This document shows positions 2,896-43,705 of a stretch of 53,498 bases of DNA, piece after piece. A program made the position numbers and the translations under genes. Within the stretch, counting starts at the first letter, position 1. Each line of letters opens with the position of its first letter. Origin of the DNA: Macrostomum lignano (taxonomy: Eukaryota). Location: the NCBI GenBank assembly GCA_002269645.1, contig NIVC01004243.1:1-53498 (forward strand). Direction: 5' to 3'. The notes beneath the pieces were generated by a model. The model worked only from the letters and a program-made list of their open reading frames with translations, did no database searches and was not told where the DNA came from.

Positions 2896-2915
2896 ACAAA
2901 GACTGCACTGCTCAC

Positions 2916-13400: not shown

Positions 13401-13480
13401 TCGGGCCGCCCATCAGGCCCGCCTCGAGCGAGCTCGCCTCCGACTCTGAGTTGGATTTTGAGGACTCTGACACGGACTGA
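10411..13480 (+). CDS. C3HC4 RING finger protein (TRAF/PDZRN-type RING plus following Zn-finger) with a low-complexity and coiled-coil C-terminus, 2 exons, about 608 aa; putative E3 ligase
   Basis: Exon 10411-10694 ends at donor TG|GTGAGC, and exon 11938-13480 starts at acceptor CTGCAG|C. Splicing rebuilds FECRICFSILKDCHECRNRHRFCYGCI...FCPVCR, followed by VRCSECNWRGCLRDFDGHEH. Confidence 0.85.
10708..11877. repeat. 30-bp intronic minisatellite (GGGCGATTCTTACAGCCATTGTTTATGYCA)n
   Basis: Visible tandem array filling the RING gene intron. Confidence 0.95.
12737..12906 (+). repeat. Coding 12-bp repeat encoding (A/T)APQ-type tetrapeptides
   Basis: GCAGCGCCACAA / ACAGCGCCACAA units in frame within the RING gene exon 2. 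Confidence 0.9.
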
Positions 13481-13591
13481 TGACGGGGCTTGAAAGTTGT
13501 TTGAAAATTTCTTGTGATTTCAAAAACTTGTGATGTCCGAGCACTTTTCCCTTGGTGCTCGCAGCCTCTCCTGGCACTATCTTGACATCCT

Positions 13592-14078
13592 AGCCACTGC
13601 CTCTCCTGACACCCCTGTCTCTCCTGATACTCCACTGCCTCTCCTGACACCCCAATCTCTCCTGAGACCCCATTGCCTCTCCTGACACCCCAATCTCTCC
13701 TGATACTCCACTGCCTCTCCTGACACCCCTGTCTCTCCTGATACTCCACTGCCTCTCCTGACACCCCTGTCTCTCCTGATACTCCACTGCCTCTCCTGAC
13801 ACCTGTCTCTCCTGACACCCCGCTGCCTCTCCTGACACCCTCTGCCTCTCCTGACAACCCACTGCCTCTCCTGACACCCCACTGCCTCTCCTGACAACCC
13901 ACTGCCTCTCCTGACACCCCACTGCCTCTCCTGACACCCCACTGCCTCTCCTGACACCCCACTGCCTCTCCTGACACCCCACTGCCTCTCCTGACACCCC
14001 ACTGCCTCTCCTGACACCCCACTGCCTCTCCTGACACCCCACTGCCTCTCCTGACACCCCACTGCCTCTCCTGACACC
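13592..14078. repeat. About 21-bp minisatellite (CCACTGCCTCTCCTGACACCC)n
   Basis: Visible tandem array. Confidence 0.95.
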
Positions 14079-14586
14079 CATGTGAACGGTTTTACGATGC
14101 AGATTATTGAAATGGAGCACTATCGTTCGCCATAAAAAACATAGTTACATTCTTTAATTGTAATACGAAAATAATACTACTGGATATTGTAAACTCTACC
14201 TGTAGATAGCGGCATGTAGACACCTATATAGAAGTCTAAATTTTATCCGTTTTTCCCAACGCTGCCCGCTTCATCTGCTTCAAGCGCACTTGTAGATGTA
14301 CTGCTTTTCATGTTTCATTGCATTTCACTTCGCTGTACAGAAAATATCTACAGACGACTTGTATTTTCGTAGAAAGAGTTTCATATTTCCATATCATAAA
14401 AGGAAAAATAGCAAGGCGTTTCATTTTATAACACTAATTACAACTCGATTAATTTCGGTTTCTTAACCATTTATAGTAACAAATTTTTCGCTGGCGTGCA
14501 ATCTTCTATTTTGAATCGAAAAGTGCAGAAAAGTGCATCCAGCTAGGCACGAAGTAGACCGCATATGGGACACCAGAGTGGCATGA

Positions 14587-17097: not shown

Positions 17098-19816
<2,719 letters not shown>

Positions 19817-20922: not shown

Positions 20923-21645
20923 TCAGCTAGCCGAAGTTTTCCCCGACGCGGACTCAGCAGCCGCCGAGGCCCGCAGTTGCTCGCCCATTGCCCGAAACCG
21001 ATTGGCCAGAGCTTCATCTCTCGGGCCGCAGTCGCCTCTGGCGTAGGCCGTGGCCGCGTTGAAGCAGCCGTTGGCGTAGCCCAGTTCGCAGGCGCGCACG
21101 GCAAAGCGCAGCGACTCCGGCAGATCGCGTGGCTTATCCGGCGCTTCAATCATGTGCAGGGCGGACAGGTGAAAGCAGGCGGCGCCGTAGTCGGCCCGAC
21201 AGGCCTTGTCGAAAGCCTCCAGAGCGCCCGGCAGGTTGGGCGCGTGACTGGCCAGGGCTTTGGCGTCTATGACGCCCAGACCGAAGCAGCCGGTCGGGCT
21301 GTCCAACTCGTGGCAGGCTCGGCTGTAAAATCGGCGCGCCGCGTGGCAGTCCCTGGCGGCGCCGCCGAGGCCGCGCAGTCGCGCGTTGCCCAGCCGCAGG
21401 CAGCTGTCGGCGTGGCGCAACGAGCCGCAGGCGTCGGCAAGCAGGCCAAGGGCCTCCTCGCGAGGCTCCTTGGCGCGCTGCTGCAGGAGGGCGTCGGCCA
21501 GGCGGTAAGCGGACTGGCCGGCTGCGGCCAGCCTGCTGGCGTCGCTGCTGCCGCCTTCCACGCGCCGTCGGGCCTCGGCGTAGATGGAGCGCAGCTCCTC
21601 CAGCGACTCAGTTGGCGCCGACTGCGTGTGAGGTGTCGGCGACTT
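20923..21645 (-). CDS. COA7: Cytochrome c oxidase assembly factor 7 homolog (Sel1-like repeat protein)
   Basis: Motifs HADSCLRLG, ACFHLSALHM, RDL...RACELGYANGCFNA...GD...RDEALA match COA7/SELRC1 as recalled. There is no ATG near the 5' end; the frame begins at acceptor TTTTGTCGCAG|AAG (21645, phase 0). Confidence 0.88.
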   Translation of the reverse strand, partial: KSPTPHTQSAPTESLEELRSIYAEARRRVEGGSSDASRLAAAGQSAYRLADALLQQRAKEPREEALGLLADACGSLRHADSCLRLGNARLRGLGGAARDCHAARRFYSRACHELDSPTGCFGLGVIDAKALASHAPNLPGALEAFDKACRADYGAACFHLSALHMIEAPDKPRDLPESLRFAVRACELGYANGCFNAATAYARGDCGPRDEALANRFRAMGEQLRASAAAESASGKTSAS

Positions 21646-22008
21646 CTGCGACAAAATTGGTGCCTTGTTGATGATTGGCGCGGCTCTGATCTAGTAGCTT
21701 GGCAGCTCTAATCTTATCTGATGTCTCTAATCTTATGAGTAAAAACAAGCCTAAATTAAAGATTAGATGAACACGAGTCTATTGACATATCTAATCTCAT
21801 GGGTAAGCAGGAGTCTGAAAGATCTAATCTCATGGGTAAACAGCAATCTAATGGCAAAGCTAATCTCTTAGGTAAACAGCAATCTAATGGCAGATCTAAT
21901 CTCATAGGTAAACAGCAATCTAATGGCAGATCTAATCTCATTGGTAAACAGCAATCTAATGGCAGATCTAATCTCATAGGTAAACAGCAATCTAATGGCA
22001 GATCTAAT

Positions 22009-25000
22009 TGTTGGGCCTGGTGCGTGGGGTTGGGGTGCGCTTTTACTCCGTGTATTGTTTGTGTTCTTAACTCTGTGCGTGTACTCATGGTCCGTGGCTC
22101 ACGCTCTTTGCACGTCTCTGCTCTATCGTGATTTTAATGTACTTTGTTGGTGTTTTAGCCCTAATAAATCGTATCGTTGGTTGTCGGTGCTCTTGGCACT
22201 TTCGTCTTGTCTCGCATACTCTCAGCTCATGACTTGTTCATTTCAACATTTTGGCGTCGCAAGATGTCTATAAAGCTACGAGACCCACTGCCTCTAAACA
22301 ACATTGAAGAGTTGCGGGCATGGATCGAGGTCTTTGACGCCCAGGTGCGATCAAAAGGAGTGAAGGACACCGATCGCACTGATGACACAGCCGGTAATCT
22401 GGCGTTGACCGATGCCTTCCTTGGCTGCCTTGGCGTGGCACAGCTCATCTAAGTGAAGCAGCTGGTCGCGCCCAAACCGCTCTCGCAGATGAAGTGGGCG
22501 GAAATCAAGGAGTGCCTCGTGCGGTTTCTGGAGCCCAAGAAGAGGCTGCTGATTGCCGAGAGAGCAGCTTTCATGTCCATGCGCCAAGGAGACGGCGAGA
22601 CGGTTGCCGGCTTCGCTGCCCGACTTCAAGAGCAGGCGGTGGTGTGCGAATTCGAGAAGCTGAAGGGCGAGAATGTTGATCCAGCTGAGCAGCTGATCAA
22701 AATGCGCCTCATCGCCGGTCTCAGCAACCAGGAGGTCCGGAGCAAGGTTCTCGAGCGCGAAGTCTCCGCAGAGCTCTCGGTGAGCCAGATCACCGAGTAC
22801 GTGCAGCAACTACAGATGGTGAGCAAATTTTCGTTTGGGCCACTGACTGCCTCCGGCCAAGCTGAAGGAGACTCGGCGGTGCATCAGGCATCGCCCGCTA
22901 GCCAGGAGGTACCAGAAGAGGATTCTGCTGGTGCCAACAGCATCAACGCGGCTGAGATGGTGAGGCCCAGAGCCGGTGGAGGCCAGAGCTGCCAGCGCTG
23001 CGGCCAGGCGCAACATAGCAGACCGACAGACTGCCGGGCCCTGAAGGTCATCTGTCACAAGTGCGGGAAGATTGGCCACTTCACGAAGGTCTGCCGGAGT
23101 GCCAGGACCCACTTTGTCGCACCCAACGAATCCAAGCACTCTGACTCAGCCGTGACCAGAGACGAGCCGGTTTTCTACTGCGGTGCGGGCACCCCTGCTG
23201 CATTCTGCGATGTGAAAATCAACAGAAGGCAGGTCAAAATGGAAAAGGACAGCGGCGCCTCGTGCTCACTAATCTCGAGAAAGATCTGGGAAGAACTCGG
23301 CAGGCCGCCACTGAAGTCGCCCAAGTCTCGGATGCTGGCCTACGACGGGCACGTGATGAAGCAGCTCGGCATCCTGGAGTGCCTGGTGGAGACTGGCGGC
23401 CCTGATGGCCGCTTCGCTGCGGCGGAGCTGCCCGTCATCGAATGCGAGCAGAAGTTCGGGTTGCTCGACCGGGATCTGCTCAGCTCGCTGCCAGCTCACC
23501 ACTCAGATGAGGCCAAGCCGCCCAGCAACAACAGGTACGAGAGCTTGTTGGGCATCAAGGGAGCAGTTGGCGAGATCCTGTTGAAGGCGGGAGCCAGGCC
23601 GATTTTCCAACCAGCCAGAGAGCTGCCGCTGGCGCTGCGTCCACTGGTGAAGGAGCTGGACCTGATGGAGAAGGCGGGCATAGTTGAGAAGGTGACGTCC
23701 TCAGAGTGGGGCAGCTCCAAAGTGGTGACGGTGAAATCCGACAAGATGTCTGTGAGGATCTGCGGAGACTACACTGCTGTCAATCAGTGGGTGCAGGACC
23801 AGACGTACTTGACTCCGTCCGTCGAGACAGCCTTCTCAAAGATGGGAAACAAGAAGTTGTTCTGCCGACTGGATTTATCTGACGCTTATTATCAGGTTCC
23901 GCTGGAAAATGAGTCAAAAGACATCACCACGATCAACACCCCTTTCGGCTGCTACCGCTTTAACAGGCTGCCGTACGGCATCAAGGTTTCTCCGTCTGTG
24001 TTCCAGCGCGAGATGGAGAAGCTGCTGGGTGAGCACACAAGTGTACCAGGATGATGTGCTCATGGGAGCGGTGTCAAAGGCGGAGCTGCAGAATATCAGA
24101 GAGAAGGTGCTGGACAAGCTGAGGGCAGCTAATGTGAAAATCAACGAAGCGAAGAGCAATTTGGAGGCCAGAAGCCTAAAGTTCCTGGGCCACATCATCG
24201 ATGAAGAGGGGATCAAGCCGGATCCGGGAATGGTGCAGAAGATTCAGGATTGTGGAGGCTCCGAAAAGCAAGAATGATCTAGAGCGGTTTCTGGGCTTGG
24301 CGCAGTTCTATGGTCGGTTGGTTCCCAACTTTGCTGAGAAGTGTCGGCCTCTGCAGGAACTTCGTCGAGCGGACCGTGTGTTTGACTGGAGTGCGGCTGC
24401 CGAGGCAGCGTTCACCAATGTGAAGCAGAGCCTGAGCTCGAATCCGTGTGTGAAACCGTTTGACGTCAACTCACCGGTGTGTCTGTGGGTGGATGCTAGC
24501 GAGCAGTCTCTGGGCGCTGTGCTGGTGCAGTCAGGGCACCCAGTCATGTACCTCTCTCGGGCGCTGACCAAGTCTGAGGCCAACTACTCCAACATTGAGC
24601 GGGAGGCTCTGGCCATTGTCTGGGCGGCGGAGCGAGCCCGCAAGATGCTCCTGGGGAAGAGGTTCACGCTCCAGACTGACCACGAGCCACTGAAGTACAT
24701 CTTCAATCCCAGCAAGAACCTTCCTAAAACAGTGTCCGCAAGACTAACTCGCTGGGCCCTGCGACTATCTGCTTTTGACTACGAGGTTGAGTATGTGCCA
24801 GGAAGACTGATGGTGGATGCGGATGCCTTATCTCGTTTGAGTTTTGCTGCCCAAGACCCTCCAAGTGACGCCGTGCACCAGCTGGAGCATGAAGAGGTCG
24901 TGTCAGAAGGAGCTCTTGTGACTCTGCAGGATCTTCGTGAGGGAACCAGGATGTGGTGTTGATGAAGCGGCTGCAGCAGAGGATCAGAACAGGCCGGTGG

Positions 25001-26430
25001 GGCCAGGTGTCGCAGGTGGAGAGGCTGTACAAAGCGTGCCGGGAGGCGCTGTCGGTGGAAGACGGTCTGGTGATCCACGGAACCAGAATTGTGCCCCCAA
25101 CTGTTCTCCGCAGGCGCATTCTGGAGGTGGCGCACGACGAGGTGCATCCGAGCGCCGACAACACCAAGGCGCACATCTCCAAGGATTTCTGGTGGCCGGG
25201 TCTCGATCGCGATGTTCGCAGCTTTGTGGAGCGCTGCCAGCAGTGCTCAGAAACTCGGCCAGTCCTGCAGCGGAGAATCGACACCTGGCCAGCCGAGAGT
25301 GAGCCGTGGTCCCGGGTTCACATGGACCATTGTGAGATTTCTGGTGTCGGCCTGCTACTGCTACTGTCGGACTCCTACTCCGGGTGGCCTGAGGCGATTC
25401 AGGTGCCAGACCGAACTGCGGACAGTGTCCTGCGGGTTCTGAGAGCGGTATTTGCCAGGAACGGAGTGCCTCGGACGCTGGTGTCGGACAATGCGCCGGA
25501 GTTCAAGTCGGAGAAAGTGTCCCAGTGGCTGCGCAGCATCGGGTGCCAGGAGCTGCACACTCCACCGTACCATCCGGCCTCGAACGGTCAGGCAGAAAGG
25601 CTGGTGAGGATCATCAAGGATAGACTCAAGGCGTGGACGAAGATGGTGCCGTTCGATCACTTCCTGCAGAAACTGCTGCTGACGATCAGGACCAGCCGGC
25701 CCAGTGGAAATTGAGCGGCATCTCCGGACGTTCTGATGTGGGGTCGTCGCCTTCGCCACCCGCTAACCATGACTGAGTAGGTGGGCGATCCAATCTGGCT
25801 GAGGATGCGTCCGGGATTTTCGCCGGTTCCGGCCAAGTTCGTGGTGCAGCACGGCCAGAACACGGCGCTGGTAGCCCCTGCGGACCAATCGGACGGCGGC
25901 CTGCGGCTGGCGCACTCGAATCAGTGGACCGGCCGGCCGAGTGCGCCTGGGTCGCCTGAGGGGGCCAAACCTGAGGCGGAGTTGCCGGAGCAGCTTCCTG
26001 GCGCAATGGTTGAGCACCTTCCTGATCCGGAACCAACGGTGGCGCCAATGAACAGTGGCCAGCGAGAGCCGTACGAGCTTCGGCCTTGCCCGCCTGTCTG
26101 CTTTAAAGTATAGTGACTCTTTGTGACTGTACTTGACTCTGATTTTGTTCTTGTGGTTTCAGTCTTTGTTTGCTTTGGCGGGGGGGGCAGTGTTGGGCCT
26201 GGTGCGTGGGGTTGGGGTGCACTTTTACTCCGTGTATTGTTTGTGTTCTTAACTCTGTGCGTGTACTCATGGTCCGTGGCACACGCTCTTTGCACGTCTC
26301 TGCTCTATCGTGATTTTAATGTACATTGTTGGTGTTTTAGCCCTAATAAATCGTATCGTTGGTTGTCGGTGCTCTTGGCACTTTCGTCTTGTCTCGCATA
26401 CTCTCAGCTCATGACTTGTTCATTTCAACA
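22009..26430 (+). mobile_element. Full-length Ty3/Gypsy LTR retrotransposon (twin-knuckle gag; Mag/K02A2.6-like), coding region disrupted
   Basis: LTRs are 22009-22248 and 26191-26430 (240 bp, TG...CA, 3 differences). The TSD is CTAAT at 22004-22008 and 26431-26435. The PBS TGGCGTCGCAAG is at 22252-22263 and the PPT at 26177-26190. Domain order is gag (CHKCGKIGHFTKVC), PR (KDSGA), RT (LDLSDAYYQV...YQDD), RNaseH (VDASEQSLGAVL...EREALA...TDHEPL), IN (H-H-C-C, D-D-E). Confidence 0.97.
22264..26113 (+). pseudogene. gag-pol polyprotein of the second Gypsy element, inactivated
   Basis: ATG at 22264. In-frame stops at 22450-22452, 25712-25714 and 25778-25780. Frameshifts near 24035 (just before YQDD), 24250 and 24950. 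Confidence 0.88.
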
Positions 26431-27294: not shown

Positions 27295-27590
27295 GTAGAC
27301 ATTCACTGACACATCAACTGACACAGCTACTGACACATCAACTGACACAGCTACTGACACTATAACTGACACAACCACTGACACATCAACTGGCACAGCT
27401 ACTGACACTATAACTGACACAACTACTGACACTATAACTGGCATAGCTACTGACACTATAACTGACACAGCTACTGTATGACACAGCAACTGACACTATA
27501 ACTGAAACAGCTACTGACACTTTAACTGACACAGCTACCTGCCTGGCACAGCTTCTGTAACAGCTTCACATAAACTGACACTAAAGCTGC
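27295..27590. repeat. 12-bp-based repeat (ACTGACACAGCT / ACTGACACTATA)n
   Basis: Visible degenerate array. Confidence 0.85.
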
Positions 27591-27640: not shown

Positions 27641-30600
27641 TCAATTCAAATTGTGCTTCTCCCGCAGCTGCCACGCCATCTCGAGCAGTTTCAGCCGCTC
27701 ATCGGCATCATCAATATTATAGGCAGCCAGATCGGCCAGTGACAAACGGCTGGGCGCGCTCACCACGTTCGGGAACTGGGTGTGGCCCGGCAGCGCCCTG
27801 TGCGTGTCCCTGAACACCCGGTCAGCAATGGCGTTCAGCAGCCTCCAGGGCAGGAGCTCCTCCCGGCGTTCCTGCTCGCTTCGCTCCGAGCTGCAAGCGC
27901 TGCGCAGGCAGCTAAGGAGGGCTCGAACTCCGAACGAGCCCGAGCTGCTGCCGGCCAGAGCTACCTGGCTGGCGCCGGCTGAGTACAACCGGAAATAGTC
28001 CGGACTCTCCAGGATCTGCGGGAATGGGCGGACTCTTCAGGCTAATATTGCCAGTGTCTAACCTGATCTACTAATCTGCATTTCTCTACTAATCCCCTCA
28101 ATTCCTCTCCTAATCCCCCATTCCTCTACTAATCCCTTCAATTCCTCTCCTAATCCCCCATTCCTCTCCTAATCTCCTAATACCCCATTCCTCTCCTAAT
28201 CCCCCATTCCTCTCCTAATCCCCCATTCCTCTCCTAATCCCCTCAATTCCTCTCCTAATCCCCTCAATTCCTCTCCTAATCCCCCATTCCTCTCCTAATC
28301 CCCCATTCCTTTCCTAATCCCCCCAATTCCTCTCCTAATCCCCATTCCTCTCCTAATCCCTTCAATTCCTCTCCTAATCCCCCATTCCTCTCCTAATCCC
28401 CCATTCCTCTCCTAATCCCCCATTCCTCTCCTAATCCCCCATTCCTCTCCTAATCCCTTCAATTCCTCTCCTAATCCCCCATTCCTCTCTAATCCCCCAT
28501 TACTCTCCTAATCCCCTCAATTCCTCTCCTAATCCCTCATTCCTCTCCTAATCCCCCATTCCTCTCCTAATCCCCTCAATTCCTCTCCTAATCCCCCATT
28601 CCTCTCCTAATCCCCCATTCCTCTCCTAATCCCCCATTCCTCTCCTAATCCCCCATTCCTCTCCTAATCCCTTCAATTCCTCTCCTAATCCCTCATTCCT
28701 CTCTAATCCCCCATTACTCTCCTAATCCCCTCAATTCCTCTCCTAATCCCTCATTCCTCTCCTAATCCCCTCAATTCCTCTCCTAATCCCCCATTCCTCT
28801 CCTAATCCCCTCAATTCCTCTCCTAATCCCCCATTCCTCTCCTAATCCCCTCAATTCCTCTCCTAATCTCCCATTCCTCTCTAATCCCCCATTACTCTCC
28901 TAATCCCCAATTCTACGTAATAAGTCTACTCAATCCTCAACCCGGAGATAAGCAGCGGATTCGGCAGCCAGCGACGCACCGGCAGGCTGGGCGCGACTCC
29001 CATCGTCAAGTTGTCGGCAGTTCGGCAGGCGTCGTAGAAGCCGAGCAGGAGGCGCCGGCCGCTCTGCTGGTGCACCGGCAGCGCCTCGAACAGCGGCCTG
29101 ACCAATTCGGCGTCGATATCGACGGAGCCGCCGCCGGGCAGCACGAACAGGTTGCGACCGATGGTGTTGGCGTCCTGGCTGGACACCGACAGCTCGCCGT
29201 GGCCGTCCACCAGCAGTAGCGCCTGCACCGGATGGCCTTCGGTGGTTTTGAATTGGATAAAGTTTTCATTGGCCTTAAGTTGTAAACGAGACCGATAAGT
29301 TATAATAGGTAGTAAAGAAACACCAGGACACATATCGGCAATAAATACAGTTTCGATACATATCGGCAATCAATACAGTTTCGATACATATCGGCAATAA
29401 ATAGTTTTGGTACATATCGGCAATCAATAGTTTCGATACATATCGGCAATAAATAGTTTTTATACATATCGGCAATAAATAGTTTCAATACATATCGGCA
29501 ATCAATAGTTTCGATACATATCGGCAATAAATATTTTCGATACATATCAGTAATAAATACAGTTTCGATACATATCGGCAATTAATACAGTTTCGATAAA
29601 TATCGGGAATCAATGCAGGTTCGATACATATCGGTCAGGAAAATTCGAAAACTAGACGGACAGCTGAAAGTACTAACAATCGCTGCCGCCAGCTTCCCTC
29701 AGCAATTCGCAGAAGTCGGCAACCACGGCCAGCAGGGCTTCCTTGGCGTCGCCGGAGTCGCCGCGGGCCCAGTCGCAGCAGACGATTGTCTGGTAGCCCA
29801 GCAGTTGCAGAGCGCCCGCTACCTGGCGCAGTTCGCCGGGCACGCATGGCAGATCGCCGCACTCGTAGCGACTGGCGCCAATGAGAAGGGCGAACTTGCG
29901 CCACGCCGGCTGAGCGACCGTGACCAGGCGATTAGCCGCGAATATCGAGAAGAAATCCGTGAGCATCACGAGGTCTGATAAGCGGGTCCTAGTAGCCGAG
30001 ACCTGGAATGTTAAATATGACCATGTTAAGTGACGGATTTTGTAAAACCTGTTTATGATCGGAAATCTGATCTATGACCAGAAAAAATCTATATGACCAG
30101 AAAGCCTATCTATATGACCAGACAGCCAATCTATATGACCAGAAAGCCGATCTATATGACCAGAAAGCCTATCTATATGACCAGAAAGCCGATCTATATG
30201 GTCAGACAGCCTATCTATATGATCAGACAGCCTATCTATATGATCAGACAGCCTATCTATATAATCAGACAGCCTATCTAAATTATCATCAGACAGCCTA
30301 TCTATATGATCAGACAGCCGATCTATATGATCAGACAGCCTATCTATATGATCAGACAGCCTATCTATATGATCAGACAGCCTATCTATATGATCAGAAA
30401 GCCTATCTATATGATCAGACAGCCTATCTATATGATCAGACAGCCGATCTATATGATCAGACAGCCTATCTATATGACCGGGAAGCCAATCCTTGCGACC
30501 AGAAAGTCTATCTGTTACCAGAATGTCGTATGACATAGCTCATGCACAGAACGCTGACCTGCAGTTCAGGCAGCTGCTCCTGGTACCGCTCCGCTATCTC

Positions 30601-32775
30601 CCTGATGGACTTCGACACCCCAGTGAGGAAGCTGTCCACCTGCAGTCGTCCCTCGTCGCACAGGTGCTGGCGCAGCTGCGAATTCAAAGCCGAAATGCCG
30701 AACGACTGTCGATTCCGGTTGTGCCTGGCGCTGTCCAGCACGGCAGCCGCGGCGCTGCCGTAGCTGGTGGCGTGCAAGCGGTGGATCTGGCTGCCACGAA
30801 CTGTCACGCCGAGGTCTCCGCCCAGGTGCACAGACGGGCAGCTGGCAATACGGCACATGTCCATCATCACCACTAGAAGGCCTTTGTCGCTGCTGTCATC
30901 GCATGCCGGTTGCCTGCGACCAGCCGACATCGCGTGATTGCCAGGCAGGCAGTCGGCCAGAGGCTTGAGGAAGTCCTCCTCGACACGGAGGAAGCTGTCG
31001 GGCTGCTCCAGCTTGGCGTCGATTGGCAGAAAACAGGCGCTGGTGGTGACGCCGTCTGCTTTGTAGTTCTGCAACATGCATGATGTTGTTTCGATATTCG
31101 ATACATATCGGAACTTTAAAAGCTTTGTTATACACCGTTAATAAATTAGATACATATCAGTATTTAAATATCTTCAATACATATCGGTACTTAAATAGCT
31201 TTAATACATATCGGTACTTAAGTAGCTTCGATACATATCAGTACATAAATAGCTTCGATACATATCGGTATTTAAATAGCTTCGATACATATCGGTATTT
31301 AAATAGCTTCGATACATATCGGTACTTAAGTAGCTTCGATTACAGAAACAGAACTTCCATATATATCGGCAGGGATAGCTAGGTGCACATACGTTTACGA
31401 CAGTGCCATGACCATCTAACAATAGAAACAGGTGCGGCTCCGGCCCGCTCAGAAGTGCCAAAATGTGACGCAGCCGATCGATGGCGCAGAGCAGCTTTGC
31501 CCGGCTCGGATCCATCAGACGGAGGGTCCGGTAGCCCAGCTTGCGAAGGTAGTCCTCCAATTGGTCGAGCTCTCTTGTATTACCGCAACCAAGCCCCGGC
31601 ATGTGCTTGTAGCTCTGGCAGCTAACTATCAGGGCGTATTTGTGCGTTCGCTCCATGTCGATAGGCAGCGGGCCCTTCGGCTTGATGTCTGGCACTGCCT
31701 GCAGCATTGGAGGCGCAGGTTGGATGCAGGGTTGCGACAAAAATGCGACTTAAGAAAGACTTAATTACTAAAGGTAGGAAGACAGGGCATTGCACTTCCT
31801 AGAAATATTTTTAAAGGCCGAGTAGGAGTTGTAGTAGTAGCTTGCAAAATATTTAATTTCCTATTTACGTAGTAAATTCTTTGCGCAGAACTACTATTAC
31901 TACTACTACTACTACTACTACTACTATTACTACTACCACCACTACTACTACTAAGTATTAGACTTACACGCGGCAAAGTTGGCCTTGCCCGAACTTTCAG
32001 GCTGAACATCACGTATGCTCGAGAACTGCCGGGCAGCTGGTTGGCGAGTTGCACTGCGCAACGGTACTGGCCCTGCGGGGGTAGTGTAAGTACGCATACT
32101 ATAGATATGATTAGCAACGTATTTGTCTTCATTATAGGCAGTCTCTTCACTTACTTGATCAGTCAGCGCCACTTGCTTAATACGCAGGTGAACACCGGTG
32201 CAGAGCACCTCAGCACTGAGCGCCTTGTGCCAGGACACGCTGGCTATGGCAGCAAACTGTTCTCCAAGGGTAACACCAAACAATGCCACGCCGCCTTCAT
32301 CAACTTCCAAGGTGCGACTGGCTGGTAGTAGTCTTTCAAACAAGCCGACGGGCTGCTGCTGCTGCTGCTGTGGTGGCTGAGGCGCCGGCGGGTTGATGCC
32401 GCGAGCGGCGGCGGCGGCAGCGTCAGCAGCGAAGCCCATGGCGGCGAGCACCTCAGCAGACTCAGGTATCCGGCGGAGCACGGAGACCAGATGGGCCAGG
32501 GTGGCGCCGCGCCGCTGGCCCATTCTTAGCAGGGCGTCGTGCGCCAAATCGATAGAATTGCTGCCAGTCTTGGCCTCGAGCTCCAGAATCTCAGTCTGCT
32601 TCAGAAAGAAGGGCATCACGCGTTTGATGAGCGGATCGCCTGGCGGGACGCCTAACTTGGTGTATAGCGTGTGAAACTGTCCACCTGGCAGGTGCTGCAG
32701 CATGAGCTGATGCGCGTTCATTTGCCTGACGGGTCTCTGCTGCGGCTGCGGCTGCTGCGGGAGCGCGGAAACCAT
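27641..32775 (-). CDS. MALT1-like: MALT1-type paracaspase with death domain, one Ig domain and two tandem caspase-like (C14) domains; 7 exons, 2499 nt, about 832 aa
   Basis: Exons are 32775-32155, 32072-31968, 31698-31393, 31068-30559, 30002-29678, 29236-28980 and 28015-27641. All junctions are GT-AG and phase-compatible (0,0,0,0,1,0); the exon 6 acceptor GAAG|GC is weak. Death-domain-like segment: FHTLYTKLG...LAHLVSVLRRI. Ig: SVSWHK...LTDQ|GQYRCAV. Domain 1: KYALIVSCQSY...LLLDGHG...MMDMCR. Domain 2: KFALLIGASRY...LLVDGHG...FYDACR. Confidence 0.88.
28065..28912. repeat. 19-21-bp pyrimidine-rich minisatellite (AATCCCCCATTCCTCTCCT)n in paracaspase intron 6
   Basis: Visible tandem array. Confidence 0.95.
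29328..29632. repeat. 26-28-bp minisatellite with core TTCGATACATATCGG in paracaspase intron 5
   Basis: Visible array, e.g. TTTCGATACATATCGGCAATAAATAG. Confidence 0.9.
30072..30500. repeat. 21-bp minisatellite (ATCTATATGATCAGACAGCCT)n in paracaspase intron 4
   Basis: Visible tandem array. Confidence 0.95.
31095..31340. repeat. 27-bp minisatellite with core TTCGATACATATCGG in paracaspase intron 3
   Basis: Unit ATACATATCGGTATTTAAATAGCTTCG. Confidence 0.9.
31889..31952. repeat. (CTA)n microsatellite in paracaspase intron 2
   Basis: Directly visible. Confidence 0.95.
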
Positions 32776-33869: not shown

Positions 33870-35918
33870 GCAGACAGGATCAGAATCCCTACAGACAGGA
33901 TCAGAATCCCTACAGACAGGATCAGAATCCCTACAGACAGGATCAGAATCCCTACAGACAGGATCAGAATCCCTACAGACAGGATCAGAATCCCTACAGA
34001 CAGGATCAGAATCCCTACAGACAGGATCAGAATCCCTACAGACAGGATCAGAATCCCTACAGACAGGATCAGAATCCTACAGACAGGATCAGAATCCCTA
34101 CAGACAGGATCAGAATCCCTACAGACAGGATCAGAATCCCTACAGACAGGATCAGAATCACTACAGACAGGATCAGAATCCTACAGACAGGATCAGAATC
34201 CCTACAAACAGGATCAGAATCCCTACAGACAGGATCAGAATCCTACAGACAGGATCAGAATCCCTACAGACAGGATCAGAATCCTACAGACAGGATCAGA
34301 ATCCCTACAGACAGGATCAGAATCCTACAGACAGGATCAGAATCCCTACAGACAGGATCAGAATCCTACAGACAGGATCAGAATCCTACAGACAGGATCA
34401 GAATCCCTACAGACAGGATCAGAATCCTACAGACAGGATCAGAATCCCTACAAACAGGATCAGAATCCCTACAGACAGGATCAGAATCCTACAGACAGGA
34501 TCAGAATCCCTACAGACAGGATCAGAATCCTACAGACAGGATCAGAATCCCTACAGACAGGATCAGAATCCTACAGACAGGATCAGAATCCCTACAGACA
34601 GGATCAGAATCCTACAGACAGGATCAGAATCCCTACAGACAGGATCAGAATCCTACAGACAGGATCAGAATCCCTACAGACAGGATCAGAATCCTACAGA
34701 CAGGATCAGAATCCCTACAGACAGGATCAGAATCCTACAGACAGGATCAGAATCCCTACAGACAGGATCAGAATCCTACAGACAGGATCAGAATCCCTAC
34801 AAACAGGATCAGAATCACTACAGACAGGATCAGAATCCTACAGACAGGATCAGAATCCTACAGACAGGATCAGAATCCCTACAGACGGGATCGGAATCCC
34901 TACAAACAGGATCAGAATTCCTACAGACGGGATCAGAATCCCTACAGACGGGATCAGAATCCCTACAGACATGATCAGAATCCCTACAGACAGGATCAGA
35001 ATCACTACAGACAGGATCAGAATCCTACAGACAGGATCAGAATCCCTACAGACAGGATCAGAATCCCTACAGACGGGATCGGAATCCCTACAAACAGGAT
35101 CAGAATTCCTACAGACGGGATCAGAATCCCTACAGACGGGATCAGAATCCCTACAGACATGATCAGAATCCCTACAGACAGGATCAGAATCACTACAGAC
35201 AGGATCAGAATCCTACAGACAGGATCAGAATCCCTACAGACAGGATCAGAATCCCTACAAACAGGATCAGAACCCCTACAGACAGGATCAGAATCTCAAC
35301 AGACAGGATCAGAATCTCAATAGACAGGATCAGAATCCCTACAGACAGGATTAGAATCACTACAGACAGGATCAGAATCCTACAGACAGGATCAGAATCC
35401 CTACAGACAGGATCAGAATCCCTACAAACAGGATCAGAACCCCTACAGACAGGATCAGAATCTCAACAGACAGGATCAGAATCTCAATAGACAGGATCAG
35501 AATCCCTACAGACAGGATCAGAATCCCTACAGACAGGATCAGAATCCCTACAAACAGGATCAGAACCCCTACAGACAGGATCAGAATCCCTACAAACAGG
35601 ATCAGAACCCCTACAGACAGGATCAGAATCTCAATAGACAGGATCAGAATCACTACAGACAGGATCAGAATCCCTACAAACAGGATCAGAACCCCTACAG
35701 ACAGGATCAGAATCCCTACAAACAGGATCAGAACCCCTACAGACAGGATCAGAATCCCTACAAACAGGATCAGAACCCCTACAGACAGGATCAGAATCTC
35801 AATAGACAGGATCAAAATCCCTACAGACAGGATCAGAGTCCCTACAGACAGGATCAGAATCCCTACAGACAGGATCAGAGTCCCTACAGACAGGATCAGA
35901 GTCCCTACAGACAGGATA
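33870..35918. repeat. 21-bp minisatellite (CAGACAGGATCAGAATCCCTA)n with 20-bp variants
   Basis: Visible array of about 2 kb. Confidence 0.97.
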
Positions 35919-36780: not shown

Positions 36781-39700
36781 TTAGGCGAGCCTGTCGTCCA
36801 GACTCTGAATCTCGCCATTGGACAATTCGGCAACAAGTTGAGCAGGTTGAAAATCAAAGTGCTGATGCTTCACTACCTGCCAAATTTGGTTGGAAATCGA
36901 AAGTTCTGTTTATACTAATATAAGTAGTATTATTGCAATATTTTCCGTCCATACCTCGTTACCCCAGCTGGACCAGCCAGGTGTGAGATTTCTGGCAAAC
37001 AGTTCGAGGCATCGATAATCGTCTGAGCCAAACAGTGCGTTGAGCAGCGCTGTGGGCAAGGGATTTTATGGCTCTATCAGATGATAGTGCAACTCATATT
37101 TTAATTTTCTATCGGTAGAAACTTGAACTTTCTCCAATTAGAGCAATGGCCATCGACAATTATCACCTGTATGCATCACACTCACCCTTACACCGGACTA
37201 ATTAGAGCAATAGCCACCCAATAATTATCAACTGTATATTACTCACCCTTACCTGGACTAATTAGAGCAATAGCCACCCAATAATTATCACCTGTATATT
37301 ACTCACCCTTACCTGGACTAATTAGAGCAATAGCCACCCAATAATTATCACCTGTATATTACTCACCCATTACACCGGACTAATTAGAGCAATAGCCACC
37401 CCATAATTATCACCCGTGTACATTACTCATCACTACACCTGACCAACTACCTAATATCCTACTAATAATCGGAGCAATAATGCCGGACTTAAATAACTCA
37501 CGCTTCAAACACGGCTTCCTTGAGTGCAGGCAAGACGGCACGGACATCAGAGTGAGCTCGGCGGGCACGCGTTTATAAACGTCGGATGACGCTGCAAGCT
37601 GGGCGGGCGCCAGCACGTAAAGCCGTTCGAAAGGCCGGCGAAATCTGCTGTGCAGTGGGGTCAGCGGTCGCCCCGTAGCGGTCACCTGCTCAAGAGTCAG
37701 CGGAATGGGCAGCTTCTGCGAATACGTTTATTACTGTTAACCATGTCGATCGAACCGGCTGACCCACCTTGACCCACAGCCAACGGCCGATGCAGCGCAG
37801 GCCCCAGGCAGCGGTCAGGTCTTCTAGCACGCAGCGCACATGCTTCAGCGAGTTGGTGCACCAGACCAGCACCAGAGGCCCCGGCCACCCCTTCGCTCCT
37901 CCCCCTGACTGTTCAGCTCGATGACGCAGCAACTCCGGCACGGGTATTCGCGACAGAAGCTCGAGCCCGATGGACTCAGCGGCAGAATAGACTCCGCGCC
38001 TGCGTGCCGACGCGTTTGGCCAGGGCGGGTCGGCCAGCACAACGTCGTAGGGCCCGTCCGATGAGCTCAGCTGGAGCAGCAGAGGCTTGGCGCTGCACAG
38101 CTGCGAGATGGCGAACGAGCTGCGAGCCGGCACAGCATAGCAACCGCCTAGCAAGCGAACTGCTCGCCGTTGGCTGACGCTGGGCTCAACAAGAGCAACC
38201 CGGCCGAAACGGCAAGCGTCGGCCAGAGCAGCGCCCGGGCCGCAGTCGGTGCCAGAGTTGAACAGCTCAAACAGGGCCGTCTGGCTCTCAATGCCGCAGA
38301 TGGAGCGAAGCTGGCCAGCCTCAGTTAGCGTCAGGAAGCTGACCAGCCCGGACTGAGTAGCTAGGGACAGCCGGCCTTCAATTGATGCCACTGAGAATGC
38401 GGACTGGGCAAGCCGGATGATGGACGAGTTTGTCCTTTATAAGTACACTGAGTTATTTCATTTATAAGTACACTGACTTCTTTCGTTTAAGTACACTGAG
38501 TTCTTTCATTTATAAGTACACTGAGTTCTGAGGTCTACGCACTACGCTCGTAGTTTGAGGATCTTTGGGATTTACAACACAAATTTGAGGATTTTTGGGG
38601 ATTAGAGCACTAGTTTGATCTTTGGGGATTACAGCATTAGTTTGAGGATCTTTGGGGATTACAACACTAGTTTGAGGATTATAGGGGATTACAACACTAT
38701 TTTGAGGATTATAGGGGATTCCAGCACTAGTTTGAGGATTATAGGGGATTCCAGCACTAGTTTGAGGATTAAAGGGGATTCCAGCACTAGTTTGAGGATC
38801 TTTGGGAATTATAGCACTATTTTGAGGATTATAGGGGATTTCAGCACTAGTTTGAGGATTATAGGGGATTCCAGCACTAGTTTGAGGATTATAGGGGATT
38901 CCAGCACTAGTTTGAGGATTAAAGGGGATTCCAGCACTATTTTGAGGATTATAGGGGATTTCAGCACTAGTTTGAGGATTATAGGGGATTCCAGCACTAG
39001 TTTGAGGATCTTAGGGGATTATAGCACTATTTTGAGGATTATAGGGGATTTCAGCACTAGTTTGAGGATCTTTGGGGATTACAGCACTAGTTTGAGGATC
39101 TTTGGGGATTCCAGCACTAGTTTGAGGATCTTTGGGATTCCAGCACTAGTTTGAGGATCTTTGGGGATTACAGCACTAGTTTGAGGATCTTTGGGGATTC
39201 CAGCACTAGTTTGAGGATCTTTGGGATTCCAGCACTAGTTTGAGGATCTTTGGGGATTACAGCACTAGCTTGAGGATCTCTGGGGATTACAGCACTACTT
39301 TGAGTATATTTAGGGATGACAGGGCTAATTTAAGGATCTTTGGAATGATAGCACTGCCTTGGGGATCTCGTTTTGGCAGCACTATACTTAAATAAATGAA
39401 TTATAGAGCCTACATCATCAGACTCGCCACTGTCCGTGTGATCTTCTACAAAACCAGCCGCAGCGGCCTTGCGTTTCCTTGATTTGGCAGGTTTTTCACG
39501 TTCGGGCTCTACAAAACATTATTGTGTGCATTAAATATGCATACTATTCTACTGATTCATTCTATTCAGTAGCGAATGCGTATATCTTACCATCGTTATA
39601 CAACGGGTCTAGAATAAGATATTCCAAGTCGGATATTGATTTTGCTTCCTTCAAGTTCCGAAGATGCCGGAGGGTCTGGCGCAGGAAAGTCGTCTCCAGC

Positions 39701-39812
39701 TGCAGCCTGGCATCGCTGGAAGCTTCTGCCTGAAAGTTTGCGCGCCGGGACTTGTGAGCTCTCGAAAGATTAGGAATCCCATCATTGTAAATCAGGGGTG
39801 GCGGTGACCTAA
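36781..39812 (-). CDS. METTL4: MT-A70 family N6-adenine methyltransferase, METTL4 homolog (N-terminus unresolved)
   Basis: Exons are about 39812-39591, 38390-37768, 37685-37502, 37049-36955 and 36876-36781, all phase-compatible. Motifs: YDVVLADPPWPNAS, LVWCTNS, WLWVK|VT, SVPSCLHSRKP, CLELFARNLTPGWSSWGNE|VVKHQH. The first listed exon's acceptor is not in phase 0, so the start lies elsewhere. Confidence 0.9.
37140..37420. repeat. About 60-bp tandem repeat in a METTL4 intron
   Basis: Unit ATTAGAGCAATAGCCACCCAATAATTATCACCTGTATATTACTCACCCTTACCTGGACTA, about 4 copies. Confidence 0.9.
38570..39340. repeat. 30-bp minisatellite (TTTGAGGATTATAGGGGATTCCAGCACTAG)n in a METTL4 intron; a short, about 25-bp array precedes it at 38440-38530
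   Basis: Visible arrays. Confidence 0.95.
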
Positions 39813-39844
39813 CTGTTGGACCTAGGAGGGTGGCAGTGACGCAG

Positions 39845-40381
39845 TCTGGGGGTGCTGAGGACCAGCCTGAGGATCCGAGAGGGTGCTGAGGACCAGCCTG
39901 AGGATCCGAGAGGGTGCTGAGGACCAGCCTGGGGATCCGAGAGGGTGCTGAGGACCAGCCTGAGGATCCGAGAGGGTGCTGAGGACCAGCTTGAGGATCC
40001 GAGAGGGTGCTGAGGACCAGTCTGGGGATCCGAGAGGGTGCTGAGGACCAGCCTGAGGATCCGAGAGGGTGCTGAGGACCAGCCTGAGGATCCGAGAGGG
40101 TGCTGAGGACCAGCCTGAGGATCCGAGAGGGTGCTGAGGACCAGCCTGGGGATCCGAGAGGGTGCTGAGGACCAGTCTGAGGATCCGAGAGGGGCTGAGG
40201 ATCCGAGAGGGTGCTGATGACCAGTCTGGGGATCCGAGAGGGTGCTGAGGACCAGCCTGGGGATCCGAGAGGGTGCTGAGGACCAGTCTGGGGATCCGAG
40301 AGGGTGCTGAGGACCAGTCTGAGGATCTGAGAGGGGCTGAGGACCAGCCCGAGAATCCGAGAGGGTGCTGAGGACCAGCCT
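39845..40381. repeat. 31-bp minisatellite (GAGAGGGTGCTGAGGACCAGCCTGAGGATCC)n
   Basis: Visible array. Confidence 0.95.
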
Positions 40382-40790
40382 TAAGAATCATCATCACAGA
40401 ATCACTTTTGAGTTTTGAACTTGAATAAGCAGCCCAAGTAAAAACTACAAGAAGTGCAACAAAATTGTTTGAAAACCAAGAATAAATTATATTGAATCTC
40501 ATACAGATCCGTATTTGAGTATGCACTGTTCGCAAACAAGCGCGGACAACTAACATTAAACCACTGACAGGGTTTTGTCTTTATATTTGATTGATAAAAA
40601 CTTTGAAAAACAACAGCAAGCATGTACACGGTTGCATAACACGGCCGATAAATAACTGAGAGTTCTAAGAAAGCTTATTTACTATGTACAAAATAAAATG
40701 AAGTTATAAGTTCTTTCAACACATTATTAAAACAAGATTAGGTAGTTGATGAACCCGATGAAAACGGCACCAAGGCCAAGAAGCGTCACA

Positions 40791-43705
40791 TCAGCGCTCC
40801 TTACGATGCCTCTTGTCCTTCTCTTTTTTCTCTTTCTTTTCCTTCTTGTGCTTCTTGTGCTTCTTCTTGCCGCCGTCTCGGTCGCTTTTGCCCGAATCTA
40901 GCTTCTCGAGCTTCTTCATCAGCTTCTCGCGCTGGGCAGGCGTCAGCGAGCGAAAGAAGGCCTCAACCTCGGCTTCGCTGCTGGCCGATGCGCCGCCGCC
41001 GGCGACGACTTCGTTGTAGCCGGAGGCCTCGGCCCGGCGGGTGAAGCGCAGGTGCTGCTCGTCGCGCATGTGCCGGCCGGCGTCGCCAAGATGAGAGTCG
41101 GGCAGCTGCGGCTCCATGGTGATGGACTTGCCATACAGCGGGCACAGCCGGTCGGTGTTCACGTGGCCCCAGCTGTGGCATTTCACGCAGCGCACGTTGC
41201 GCACCTCGATGCCAAACGGCTGGTCGCGGACCTCGTCGCTGCCTTTGCAGTAGGCCTCTCTGGGCGCCTGGAATTTGCGCTGCCATTCGAAGCGAACCTC
41301 GCGAGCCTCGCTGGGGCCGGCCTCCTCCTGCGGGACCGGGGGGTGTGATTGGTTAGATTAGCTAATTAATAGAGTTCCACTGTAGCTATGGATAATAGCG
41401 ACAGAAACTAATGGATATGGTTAAGTCCCTGAGGTTGAGGACTCAATATTTGTAATCCCATATTCACATGATGTTAAGGTAATTGTTAAGATGAATGTTT
41501 TCACTTTCAATGTGATGAGGTCTTAAATGTGAATTTTAATGATAATTGCATCAATACAATGTTCTATTGCGAAGCAGTGGAAAAGCAATAAATATTAATT
41601 CAGTAAATTATTCACTTAAGAACTGATTTAAATGCCATTTCAAGATATAACCAAGATGCTTTTTGACACCAATATACTGCTTTGCCTGCATCAAAAAAGT
41701 GTAAACTTCAATCACTGCTATCCAGACCAGACACAGACTGTCTCAAAACTTTTAGCAAAACCCCTTAATTCATTTTAGCAAACTTTTAAACTTTCAAACT
41801 TAGAATGACTATGCCCATACAAATTATAGGAAGCAAACAAAAACTCATTATATCCCAGACTCTGGATGGTATTAGTACATAAGGGGCCTAGTATATCCTT
41901 TGGTATATAGCCTGGCATGCAGAGATTGCCAAGAAAGCAAGTGGGACCAAAGTTTCAAGTCAATGTAATCAATGTATATACTTAGTATACAAAATGACTA
42001 AGTTCAACTTTGGCATAGTCTTTATATGCATAGTCATAGTTATAGTAGCTAAATTTTGATCAAAAAGAATAGCTCCTATGGATCTTTAAAAGTTATTAAC
42101 AAAAAACAAAATAAAAAATCATGTTTAATTCTATATTTTTAATTCTATATTCCAGAAGGTATATATTATGTCATGCCAGAATTTCTAGTATATATTTGGT
42201 TTGGCCAAAAAAATTGGCATGCCTTTTGGTTAAGCAAAAAATAAGGTATGCTATGCCATGGAATAGCTTGATAGCATATAATATAATATAGTATGATCAT
42301 AGTGGGGCAGTGTTTTTGAGTTTTGGAAAATACTTATAAATATATTTTATCTTGTTTATTTTTACTAGAAATACCAAAGAGTACCGAAAAAATTTATAAT
42401 TTAATTTAATGCTTATACCTCTAGTTATAAATTTTTAAAGCTTTGTTTTTTCTTGTGCATTTTTAAAATGTAATTTTTGCATATATTTTTGCTTTTTTGT
42501 GGGGCTATTGTTAATTATTTCAATGGTATATGTGGCATAAAGTTGGTAAACATGGCATGCAATAGGTGTACAAACAAAAAATGCTAGGTATATATTCTAG
42601 CAAGCAATTAACATGATCTGGAATATGGCAAAAATGGTTAAAAGATAGTTCTTCATGGTTCAGTATAAAAATAACCAATTTTTACTAATGATTTTTGGCA
42701 ATCCTCTAGTTTTGTATGGTAAATTATTTTTATTGAAAATGATAACCTTTAAATAACTTTCAGCTTGATAAGTGATAAGATAGATAATAGAGAACAAATT
42801 TAACATATTATCAAATGCCTACTTTTGTTTAAATATGTATAAATGATATTCTTTTCTAGCTTATCAATAGCTGCCTAACCATGCTATCATCAATTTTTGA
42901 CTGCATTTTGTAAACCCAGTGGACCTAACTATTTACATTAATATTATTGAAGGCACATAGATAGGCTCATGAAAAAACTAATTATATTATAGACTAGTTG
43001 AGTCCTACTTATAGAAATACCTTTGGCAGCACCAGTTCCTAAACAAGACCTTCAGGAACTTTTTATATACTGGGTATTATATTATTATCAACTTTAGTTT
43101 AACATCCATTAATATTGTTTATATATGTTTAGGGCCTAAACAAAAGTCTTAAAACAAAAACATAAGTTTAAACAAAACAAAAGGCCTAGGCACTCAATAA
43201 TATGATAAGTTTGTTCTCTATTATCTATTTTGTTATTTATTGAGCTTAAAGTTACATAAAAGTTATTATTTTCAACAAAAAATTAAATGTGTCTAAATTA
43301 TTAAGATGCCTCCATATAATATAAAAATATAAAAAATACATTAGCAATGCTTTATAATGAAATTTTATTATAGACTCTAGTAGTCGAACTAAATGTTTTG
43401 ACAGATTACGAAAGAAAAAGATAGGTCTAGGTCTAATTATATATAACAATGTAAAAAATGTTTACCTTATCAGCACCAGGGGGCCTATCATACATGAAAG
43501 CAATTCCAAGCTTTGCTTTTTCATCTCCTAAAATGGCTCGAGCTTCAAGCTGCTCTTGCTCTCGACGATAAAGAGCGACTTTTTCTTCTTCCTTTTTTTC
43601 CTCGAATTCCTTTTTCTGCTGTGCCATCCATAAACGTTTAATATTGTCGAAGCTTCCTGGGTGGAAGAACTTCTTGTTCATATAATTTTGATAACCTTTG
43701 CCCAT
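40791..43705 (-). CDS. CIR1: Corepressor interacting with RBPJ 1 homolog, 2 exons, about 258 aa
   Basis: Exon 43705-43466 encodes MGKGYQNYMNKKFFHPGS... and ends at donor AAG|GTAAAC. Exon 41327-40791 starts at acceptor CCGCAG|GAG and encodes FEWQRK..APRE..VRDQPFGIEVRNVRCVKCHSWGHVNTDRLCPL plus a Lys-rich tail. Confidence 0.93.

Follow-up and report, generated by a model that had tools for sequence, protein, structure and literature searches.

We describe a gene on the minus strand (32775-27641) of NIVC01004243.1, a 53,498-nucleotide contig of the free-living flatworm Macrostomum lignano (here called the window, and itself a complete scaffold of the Mlig_3_7 assembly), in which one Ig domain is followed by two tandem MALT1-like protease domains, an arrangement that has been described for no paracaspase in the literature searched. 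That two complete domains, each keeping its catalytic dyad, lie in one chain is highly probable. An affinity of this protein with the paracaspases, which its type 1 layout suggests, is reasonably likely, with membership moderately supported since the protein is very divergent. The full statement, that the gene encodes a divergent relative of type 1 paracaspases with duplicated and intramolecularly paired protease domains, is one that we hold tentatively, at somewhat less than even likelihood.

One mRNA encodes both protease domains

The seven exons of the gene, rebuilt with compatible phases and GT...AG borders at all introns, give 2499 nt that encode 832 amino acids and a stop codon, in agreement with the open reading frame (ORF) of about 832 residues proposed in the initial annotation, which had been made from the letters alone (Table 1). 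The rebuilt translation is 100% identical over the 824 residues of the GenBank entry PAA48081.1 ("hypothetical protein, partial"). A chance ORF is ruled out, as the translation is identical to a transcript-based coding sequence (CDS).

The protein is known from one species, M. lignano, whose assembly holds three near-identical copies of the gene, the two others lying on NIVC01000094.1 (1.29 Mb) and NIVC01002590.1 (159 kb) in the same gene neighborhood as in the window. In both, the ORF is intact and all seven exons are kept together with their splice sites; intron 5 measures 441/800/1237 bp and intron 6 measures 964/230/564 bp in the three copies, differences that arise because the copy number of minisatellite repeats varies. 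Since the three syntenic copies keep exons and ORFs while their intron lengths differ, we exclude that the assembly created the duplication, an artifact that the initial annotation had raised. Among the copies, domain 1 differs by two synonymous substitutions and one non-synonymous substitution and domain 2 by four and two, respectively, and we saw no decay of either domain, the substitutions being too few for dN/dS to inform.

The GenBank annotation of the M. lignano assembly was derived from a genome-guided transcriptome (StringTie/TACO) together with de novo assembly, and not ab initio, and TBONE was used to split transcripts at experimentally mapped spliced-leader (SL) and poly(A) sites (PMC5730564). 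TBONE made no cut between the two protease domains, and the GenBank models of all three loci extend across both. The gene is genuine and expressed, and its one mRNA encodes both domains.

We considered that the locus might give two products, either by retention of intron 5, which would yield a 623-amino-acid protein with one complete protease that ends in GGSDC-stop, or by use of the exon 5 acceptor for the spliced leader, which would yield a stand-alone domain 2. Intron 5 has the weakest splice sites of the gene (Table 1), the remaining five acceptors being CAG, and read-through into it gives GGSDC-stop, two codons in; three UniProt models (A0A1I8JFF9, A0A1I8GU18 and A0A1I8HK11; 538-539 amino acids) terminate exactly at this stop. 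Moreover, exon 5 starts in phase 0, and hence an ATG at the end of the spliced leader would be in frame, and polycistronic precursors make up about 7% of M. lignano transcripts (PMC5730564). Against these points, intron 5 is spliced in the RNA-seq-based GenBank models at all three loci, none of which was cut by TBONE, and in a fourth UniProt model (P0005) that spans both protease domains, and the short UniProt models, which stem from an earlier set of predictions, may be artifacts. We regard two products as very unlikely, and retain the reading of one mRNA for both domains.

Table 1. Positions of the gene and its parts in the window
Feature	Position	Strand	Basis or remark
Whole gene	27641..32775	-	7 coding exons, 832 aa; GenBank BOX15_Mlig034005g2 / PAA48081.1
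Coding exons 1-4	32775-32155, 32072-31968, 31698-31393, 31068-30559	-	GT-AG, phase-compatible
Coding exons 5-7	30002-29678, 29236-28980, 28015-27641	-	GT-AG, phase-compatible
Probable spliced-leader trans-splice junction	32751..32752	-	CDS of all three copies begins at codon 9 (CCG) after ...CCCGCAGCAG
N-terminal helical region, aa 34-125	32401..32676	-	six predicted helices; death-domain-like candidate
Single Ig-like domain, aa ~150-240, across intron 1	31974..32328	-	AF2 pLDDT 82-95 and Foldseek
Protease domain 1, aa 262-530 (KYALIV...LSDLVMLTD)	29955..31641	-	spans introns 3 and 4; PF00656
Domain 1 catalytic His codon CAT, H339, in LDGHGTV	31408..31410	-	codon check
Domain 1 catalytic Cys codon TGC, C416, in MDMCRIA	30853..30855	-	codon check
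Inter-domain linker, aa 531-549 (FFSIFAANRLVTVAQPAWR)	29898..29954	-	translation
Protease domain 2, aa 550-812 (KFALLI...LADLAAYNIDD)	27704..29897	-	spans introns 5 and 6; PF00656, BLASTP, AF2
Domain 2 catalytic His codon CAC, H635, in VDGHGEL	29199..29201	-	codon check
Domain 2 catalytic Cys codon TGC, C693, in YDACRTA	29025..29027	-	codon check
C-terminal helix, aa 813-832	27644..27703	-	AF2 H812-829, pLDDT ~79
Intron 5	29237..29677	-	atypical donor GTTAGT, acceptor ...CCGAAG without pyrimidine tract

Two C14 domains with intact dyads

The whole protein matches the Pfam family Peptidase_C14 (PF00656) over two stretches (E 1.1e-15, 58.4 bits), which, together with the RNA-seq-based models that span both, bears out the earlier claim of two protease domains in one chain. 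Scored alone, domain 1 reaches 40.9 bits and domain 2 reaches 20.9 bits, just below the cut-off of 21.4; domain 2 is assigned to C14 by transitive homology, through a BLASTP match (30% over 194 amino acids, E 1e-13) to a bacterial TPR-Peptidase_C14 protein (P0008) that itself scores 89 bits with PF00656. NCBIfam gave nothing for either protease domain.

All four dyad codons are exactly at the positions given for them in the initial annotation, and the His (followed by Gly) and Cys of the dyad are invariant columns in both domains when these are aligned with MALT1, an insect paracaspase and bacterial homologs. Each of the two domains can be aligned over its full length with the other, with human MALT1 and with the bacterial C14 domain, and the GHG, the D-x-C-R and a C-terminal LS(D/E)xxxLTD-type motif are in register across the alignments. 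The motifs common to the two domains are DGHG, SFG(I/V)xAL and LGY(R/Q)T, in which the previously noted DGHG, FG(I/V)xAL and LGYxT are easily recognized. The stretch that joins LTDF to KFAL (FSIFAANRLVTVAQPAWR) is 18 amino acids long, the length first estimated for it. The sequence following domain 1 is a second C14 domain that stands at the place of Ig3 in MALT1; Ig3 itself (PF18703, MALT1_Ig) has no match in the protein, and only a 20-amino-acid helix lies beyond domain 2.

Domain 1 matches human MALT1, for which the paracaspase query sequence was 100% identical to PDB 3v4o_A, with a BLASTP E of 4e-5 (24% over 156 amino acids, with His and Cys aligned), and it matches several other vertebrate paracaspases with E of 1e-6 to 1e-4, in comparisons that covered paracaspases and a bacterial C14 protein. 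Overall identity to MALT1 is about 21-24%. MALT1 D365 corresponds to E285 in domain 1 and E571 in domain 2, and D462 corresponds to D414 and D691. Since both domains keep two of the three acidic residues of the S1 pocket, both are probably able to cleave after a basic residue, and both may be catalytic.

In the full-length AlphaFold2 (AF2) model (mean predicted local distance difference test [pLDDT] 51.7, predicted template modeling score [pTM] 0.38), the confident parts are the Ig domain and the N-terminal half of domain 1. Domain 2 modeled alone has the topology b1-a1-b2-a2-b3-hairpin-a3-b4 (pTM 0.59, pLDDT 53.8), with strands preceding both the His and the Cys motifs. A Foldseek search with this low-confidence model placed MALT1 first (6h4a, E 2.2e-5), followed by caspases-11/-1/-4/-3/-7, with Arabidopsis metacaspases 4 and 9 at ranks 36-50, below MALT1 and the caspases. 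The alignments used for structure prediction were shallow and biased, as the profile search (domain 1, domain 2 and MALT1) gave almost only vertebrate MALT1 fragments, many of them with mis-predicted middles.

Distribution and paracaspase affinity

A homolog search with the whole protein returned only its own cluster, and a search with domain 1 alone returned nothing at E<=10. An exhaustive search with phmmer, which covered 1.84 billion representative proteins, returned nothing beyond the query itself, a bacterial C14 protein and an Ig-repeat protein; no metazoan paracaspase was found among these representatives at E<=0.001, nor was a second tandem-protease protein. No other protein of the same architecture is found in this set. 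GenBank and UniProt already contain the present one, though under no functional name. In the literature searched, tandem paracaspases are not described, and no paper links a paracaspase with Macrostomum or with two-domain wording, which agrees with the initial annotation, to which no described paracaspase of this architecture was known; the identifier 'Mlig034005' has no occurrence in the searchable literature text, and a survey of paracaspases mentions neither flatworms nor tandem domains (PMC5978004).

Several results weigh against a type 1 paracaspase relative with duplicated, paired domains. We found no ortholog in another species, and conservation of the architecture is unsupported. Domain 2 has no significant BLASTP match to human MALT1, and its best relative is the bacterial P0008, to which domain 1 has no significant similarity. 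Searches of the PDB with phmmer and with a two-sequence profile gave no caspase-family structure and no MALT1, which phmmer misses because the identity is too low. The equivalent of MALT1 E500 is Ala in both domains, at a loop where the alignment is uncertain, and domain 2 is without the P-[VI]-D-A that domain 1, MALT1, the insect paracaspase and the bacterial homologs keep. The Foldseek ranking of domain 2, with TM-scores of about 0.4, is biased and not independent evidence, since MALT1 made up most of the alignment given to AF2. To these are added the death domain, the tree and the dimer model, which are taken up below. The similarity behind the paracaspase label is weak, domain 1 being the one domain with a significant match to MALT1.

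If the protein were no paracaspase, it might stem from another C14 lineage (bacterial orthocaspase-like, possibly acquired horizontally, or metacaspase-like) that was fused to Ig and duplicated in flatworms. The sole non-self C14 match in the 1.84 billion representatives, which is bacterial and falls on domain 2, would fit such a lineage, as would the lack of a sequence-level MALT1 match in the PDB and a neighbor-joining tree that sets both domains between the bacterial and metazoan paracaspase groups. However, the bacterial protein resembles human MALT1 (E 3e-8) and has D-A-C-R, which points to a paracaspase-like branch, and domain 1 matches MALT1 and vertebrate paracaspases rather than the bacterial protein. 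Furthermore, the caspase QACxG and metacaspase DSCHSG motifs are both absent from the protein (the contexts are MDMCRIA and YDACRTA), an Ig ahead of C14 is the type 1 paracaspase layout, and the gene is interrupted by six spliceosomal introns and present in three syntenic copies. We consider a non-paracaspase lineage highly improbable, and the affinity with paracaspases the better reading.

The Ig domain and the N-terminal region

One Ig domain upstream of the proteases is confirmed by modeling (Table 1), as the initial annotation had it, and there is space for one, compared to two in MALT1. Foldseek with the full-length model returned Ig folds only (E 4e-6 to 1e-4), including MALT1 Ig2 (3bfo_A, TMt 0.71); Pfam gave weak I-set, V-set and Izumo-Ig matches to this region (E 0.003-0.006), and phmmer matched it to the Ig-repeat protein (P0009).

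The death domain that had been assigned to the N-terminus was not recovered. AF2 predicts six helices in this region (H34-40, H48-68, H74-89, H93-101, H104-112 and H116-124), which would suit a death fold, but their confidence is low (pLDDT 45-69), and there was no match to Pfam Death, CARD or DED at E<=10, none by BLASTP to a death-domain-bearing MALT1 (P0045), and none in the PDB. An hhalign comparison with the MALT1 death domain was non-significant (E 0.19), with its alignment at the expected helix 4-5 position. A death domain at the N-terminus is plausible but unproven.

We also noted that exon 2 (31968-32072), which encodes the last Ig strands, is less conserved than any other exon when the window is compared with the two other copies (95.2%, against >=98.4% for the remaining exons). 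All five of its nucleotide differences change amino acids (G222V, A226P, V228A, T239H), in contrast to the mostly synonymous differences of the protease exons, a pattern that could reflect diversifying selection or gene conversion acting on the Ig domain.

Origin of the second domain

Compared from end to end, the two protease domains share 26-30% identity (E 1e-8), and domain 2 is the best partner of domain 1 anywhere. In a small neighbor-joining tree, domains 1 and 2 were sisters in 66% of 300 bootstraps, and the alternative grouping of domain 2 with the bacterial sequence was seen in 29%. The best and most likely reading of these sequences is that an internal duplication took place long ago and that domain 1 then diverged faster. 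The internal duplication that had been proposed is thus favored by the similarity and the bootstraps, but it is weakened by possible long-branch attraction, as the 66% pairing joins two long branches. No intron position is common to the two protease repeats, and the alternative, that two distinct paracaspase-like genes were fused, may account for the same sequences.

The introns of the two domains also contain related repeats. Minisatellite arrays with related 26-27-bp units (GATACATATCGGTACTTAAATAGCTTC and ACATATCGGCAATAAATAGTTTCGAT) lie in intron 3 (31098-31322), just after the His of domain 1, and in intron 5 (29353-29634), just before the His of domain 2. Their core TCGATACATATCGG occurs 15 times in the 53 kb, compared to 0 expected, and solely in these two introns. 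This shared minisatellite may be a relic of the duplication or may have spread later.

A possible intramolecular pairing of the two domains

Caspase-family active sites are normally ordered by the pairing of two protease domains along the last beta-strand. MALT1 protomers activate by pairing, and caspase-8/cFLIP(L) is a heterodimer of non-identical caspase folds. In the mechanism that we propose as the most likely of those considered, a helical, death-domain-like N-terminus and one Ig would be followed by the paracaspase-like domain 1 and then by domain 2 in the Ig3 place, with domain 2 born from an old internal duplication. The last strand of domain 1 would be tethered to the first strand of domain 2 by 18-19 residues, and the two domains would pack via their beta6 edges into an intramolecular pseudo-heterodimer, in which one domain might activate or regulate its partner, much as happens between MALT1 protomers or in caspase-8/cFLIP(L). 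This would reduce the need for scaffold-driven dimerization. We propose intramolecular pairing because the linker covalently tethers the domains; it is possible, though the balance leans toward doubt, and the full-length AF2 model gives it no direct support, with a pTM of 0.38 and domain 2 unfolded.

Alternatively, the domains might pair between chains (domain 1 with domain 1', domain 2 with domain 2', or head to tail), in which case a scaffold would still be needed and the duplication would double valency or add a specificity. MALT1 and the caspases are established to pair between chains, and no contact between domains 1 and 2 is evident in the full-length model. Moreover, the gene retains the N-terminal helical region and the Ig, which are the scaffold-binding parts in MALT1 (PMC5978004), and a planarian infection study names card and bcl homologs as well as Smed-malt1, the latter without its architecture (PMC7840899), so that flatworms may have a scaffold like that of CARD, BCL10 and MALT1. 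However, a covalent link raises the local concentration of the partner, which usually favors intramolecular pairing if the linker reaches, and a linker of 18-19 amino acids should be long enough in principle. Pairing between chains is a somewhat unlikely explanation, and we keep to intramolecular pairing as the working proposal.

We also considered that domain 2 might be mainly regulatory, with little or no proteolysis despite its His and Cys. It stands exactly where the allosteric regulator Ig3 follows the MALT1 protease, with no Ig3 found in the protein, its Pfam score alone falls short of the cut-off, and the missing P-[VI]-D-A and the Ala at the E500 position would suit such a role. There are precedents for caspase-like regulatory domains in cFLIP(L) and separase. 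In contrast, the GHG, the D-A-C-R and the acidic E571 and D691 are intact in domain 2, known pseudo-caspase domains are usually without the Cys, and domain 2 is nearer the bona fide C14 consensus than domain 1. We find a mainly regulatory domain 2 decidedly unlikely, and favor two domains that may both be catalytic.

At its strongest, the proposal is a single-chain, pre-assembled paracaspase whose two domains would form an intramolecular pseudo-dimer of the MALT1 type. Such an enzyme would be active as a monomer and need no CARD-CC/BCL10-type scaffold, and it might have two active sites that differ in specificity; we consider this reading unlikely. If true, it would be the first case in the caspase/paracaspase family in which the requirement for dimerization is solved in this way. 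Both scaffold-induced dimerization and Ig3 control the activity of MALT1, which is a drug target. A naturally occurring relative with a second protease domain in the place of Ig3 would be a ready-made test of how far a covalent link can stand in for the scaffold, as well as a template for engineering constitutively assembled paracaspases.

Transcript start, repeats and neighboring genes

The annotated CDS is 5'-partial in all three copies (Table 1). The M. lignano spliced leader terminates in ATG (PMC8629364), and, as this ATG would be in frame with codon 9, we infer that the mRNA is probably SL trans-spliced at 32752/32751, with the genomic ATG at 32775 perhaps unused. Four of the six introns (introns 3-6) are full of tandem repeats with units of 19, 21, 26 and 27 bp (for example, 28079-28913 and 30087-30477), and intron 2 has only a short 3-bp array (31890-31953). 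Downstream of the stop codon, in the probable 3' untranslated region, lies a 12/24-bp array (27305-27538).

The neighbors of the gene on the same (minus) strand are genes for a Sel1-repeat protein (20923-21654) and an MT-A70-family methyltransferase (37690-38391), and 40791-41204 (-) encodes the C-terminal part of a zinc-knuckle protein that is the Cir_N gene of the other copies. Cir_N and MT-A70 lie upstream in the same order at both other loci, and the downstream Sel1 gene was called at one of them, so that synteny is conserved. About 2 kb downstream of the tandem-protease gene is the pol of a long terminal repeat retrotransposon (22453-25714, plus strand), with aspartyl protease, RVT_1, RNase H and integrase, and at the left end of the scaffold (116-1286, minus strand) are two ORFs, one gag-like with a CCHC knuckle and the other resembling an aspartyl protease. 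A DEG/ENaC gene (amiloride-sensitive sodium channel, PF00858) occupies 6457-7809 and 8390-8914 (-), its main exon matching with E 8e-61 and its upstream exon encoding the N-terminal part. A long ORF at 11870-13480 (+) has a RING-like C-x2-C...C-P-V-C-R, followed by Pro/Ala/Gln-rich low complexity and a coiled-coil-like end; it has no Pfam match at E<=0.01, and its upstream part crosses a tandem repeat.

Blocks of tandem repeats lie at 2113-4899, 10683-12186, 13577-16764, 17098-19196, 35372-35815, 38615-40556 and 50034-50612, several of them with extreme GC skew. The long ORFs in these blocks (up to 887 amino acids, on both strands) were rejected as genes, being repeat artifacts. The stretch 42001-44000 is sharply AT-rich (GC 0.28, compared to 0.42-0.67 elsewhere).

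Comparison with known systems

Two tandem caspase-hemoglobinase folds are known to pack in one chain, with one half supporting the other, in gingipain R (sub-domains A and B) and in separase (a pseudo-protease and an active domain). These belong to different clan CD families, and in each only one half is catalytic.

Type 1 paracaspases, of which bilaterians typically have one, consist of a death domain, Ig domains and a paracaspase domain, and type 2 paracaspases consist of the paracaspase domain only, without death domain or Ig (PMC5978004). The flatworm protein is like the type 1 proteins (MALT1/PCASP1-3 and invertebrate homologs) in having Ig upstream of C14, and unlike type 2 in its Ig and about 240 N-terminal residues ahead of the proteases. 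With MALT1 it shares GHG and the D-M-C-R form (YYAGHGY and LLDMCRK in MALT1), acidic residues at the D365 and D462 positions, and a domain 1 C-terminus (...LSDLVMLTD) that resembles ...LSEKRALTD. It differs from MALT1 in having two proteases rather than one, one Ig rather than two, no Ig3 (PF18703), no death domain detectable by sequence, Ala as the E500 equivalent, and an identity as low as that given above. It would also add a data point on the evolution of the paracaspase module from flatworms, a lineage missing from the survey.

With the bacterial TPR-Peptidase_C14 proteins, domain 2 shares the D-A-C-R and an N-terminal (R/K)xALxIG...Y...LP...VAGAL..LGY pattern, but those proteins are prokaryotic, with a single C14 behind TPR repeats and no Ig. 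From the metacaspases the flatworm protein differs in being without the D-x-C-H-S-G motif. Four caspases of Mytilus coruscus have two CASc domains each (PMC10967218), and domain duplication thus has a precedent in the wider family, in another spiralian and with two caspase-family domains per chain; those, however, are true caspases (CASc, p20/p10) with no death-domain-like or Ig N-terminus.

In caspase-8/cFLIP(L) and in the MALT1 homodimer, as may be the case here, a protease is activated by a second caspase-fold domain. In both of those systems the partners are separate chains that are joined by scaffolds (the death-inducing signaling complex, or CARD-CC/BCL10 filaments), and cFLIP(L) has lost its catalytic Cys, whereas the two flatworm domains share one chain and both keep theirs.

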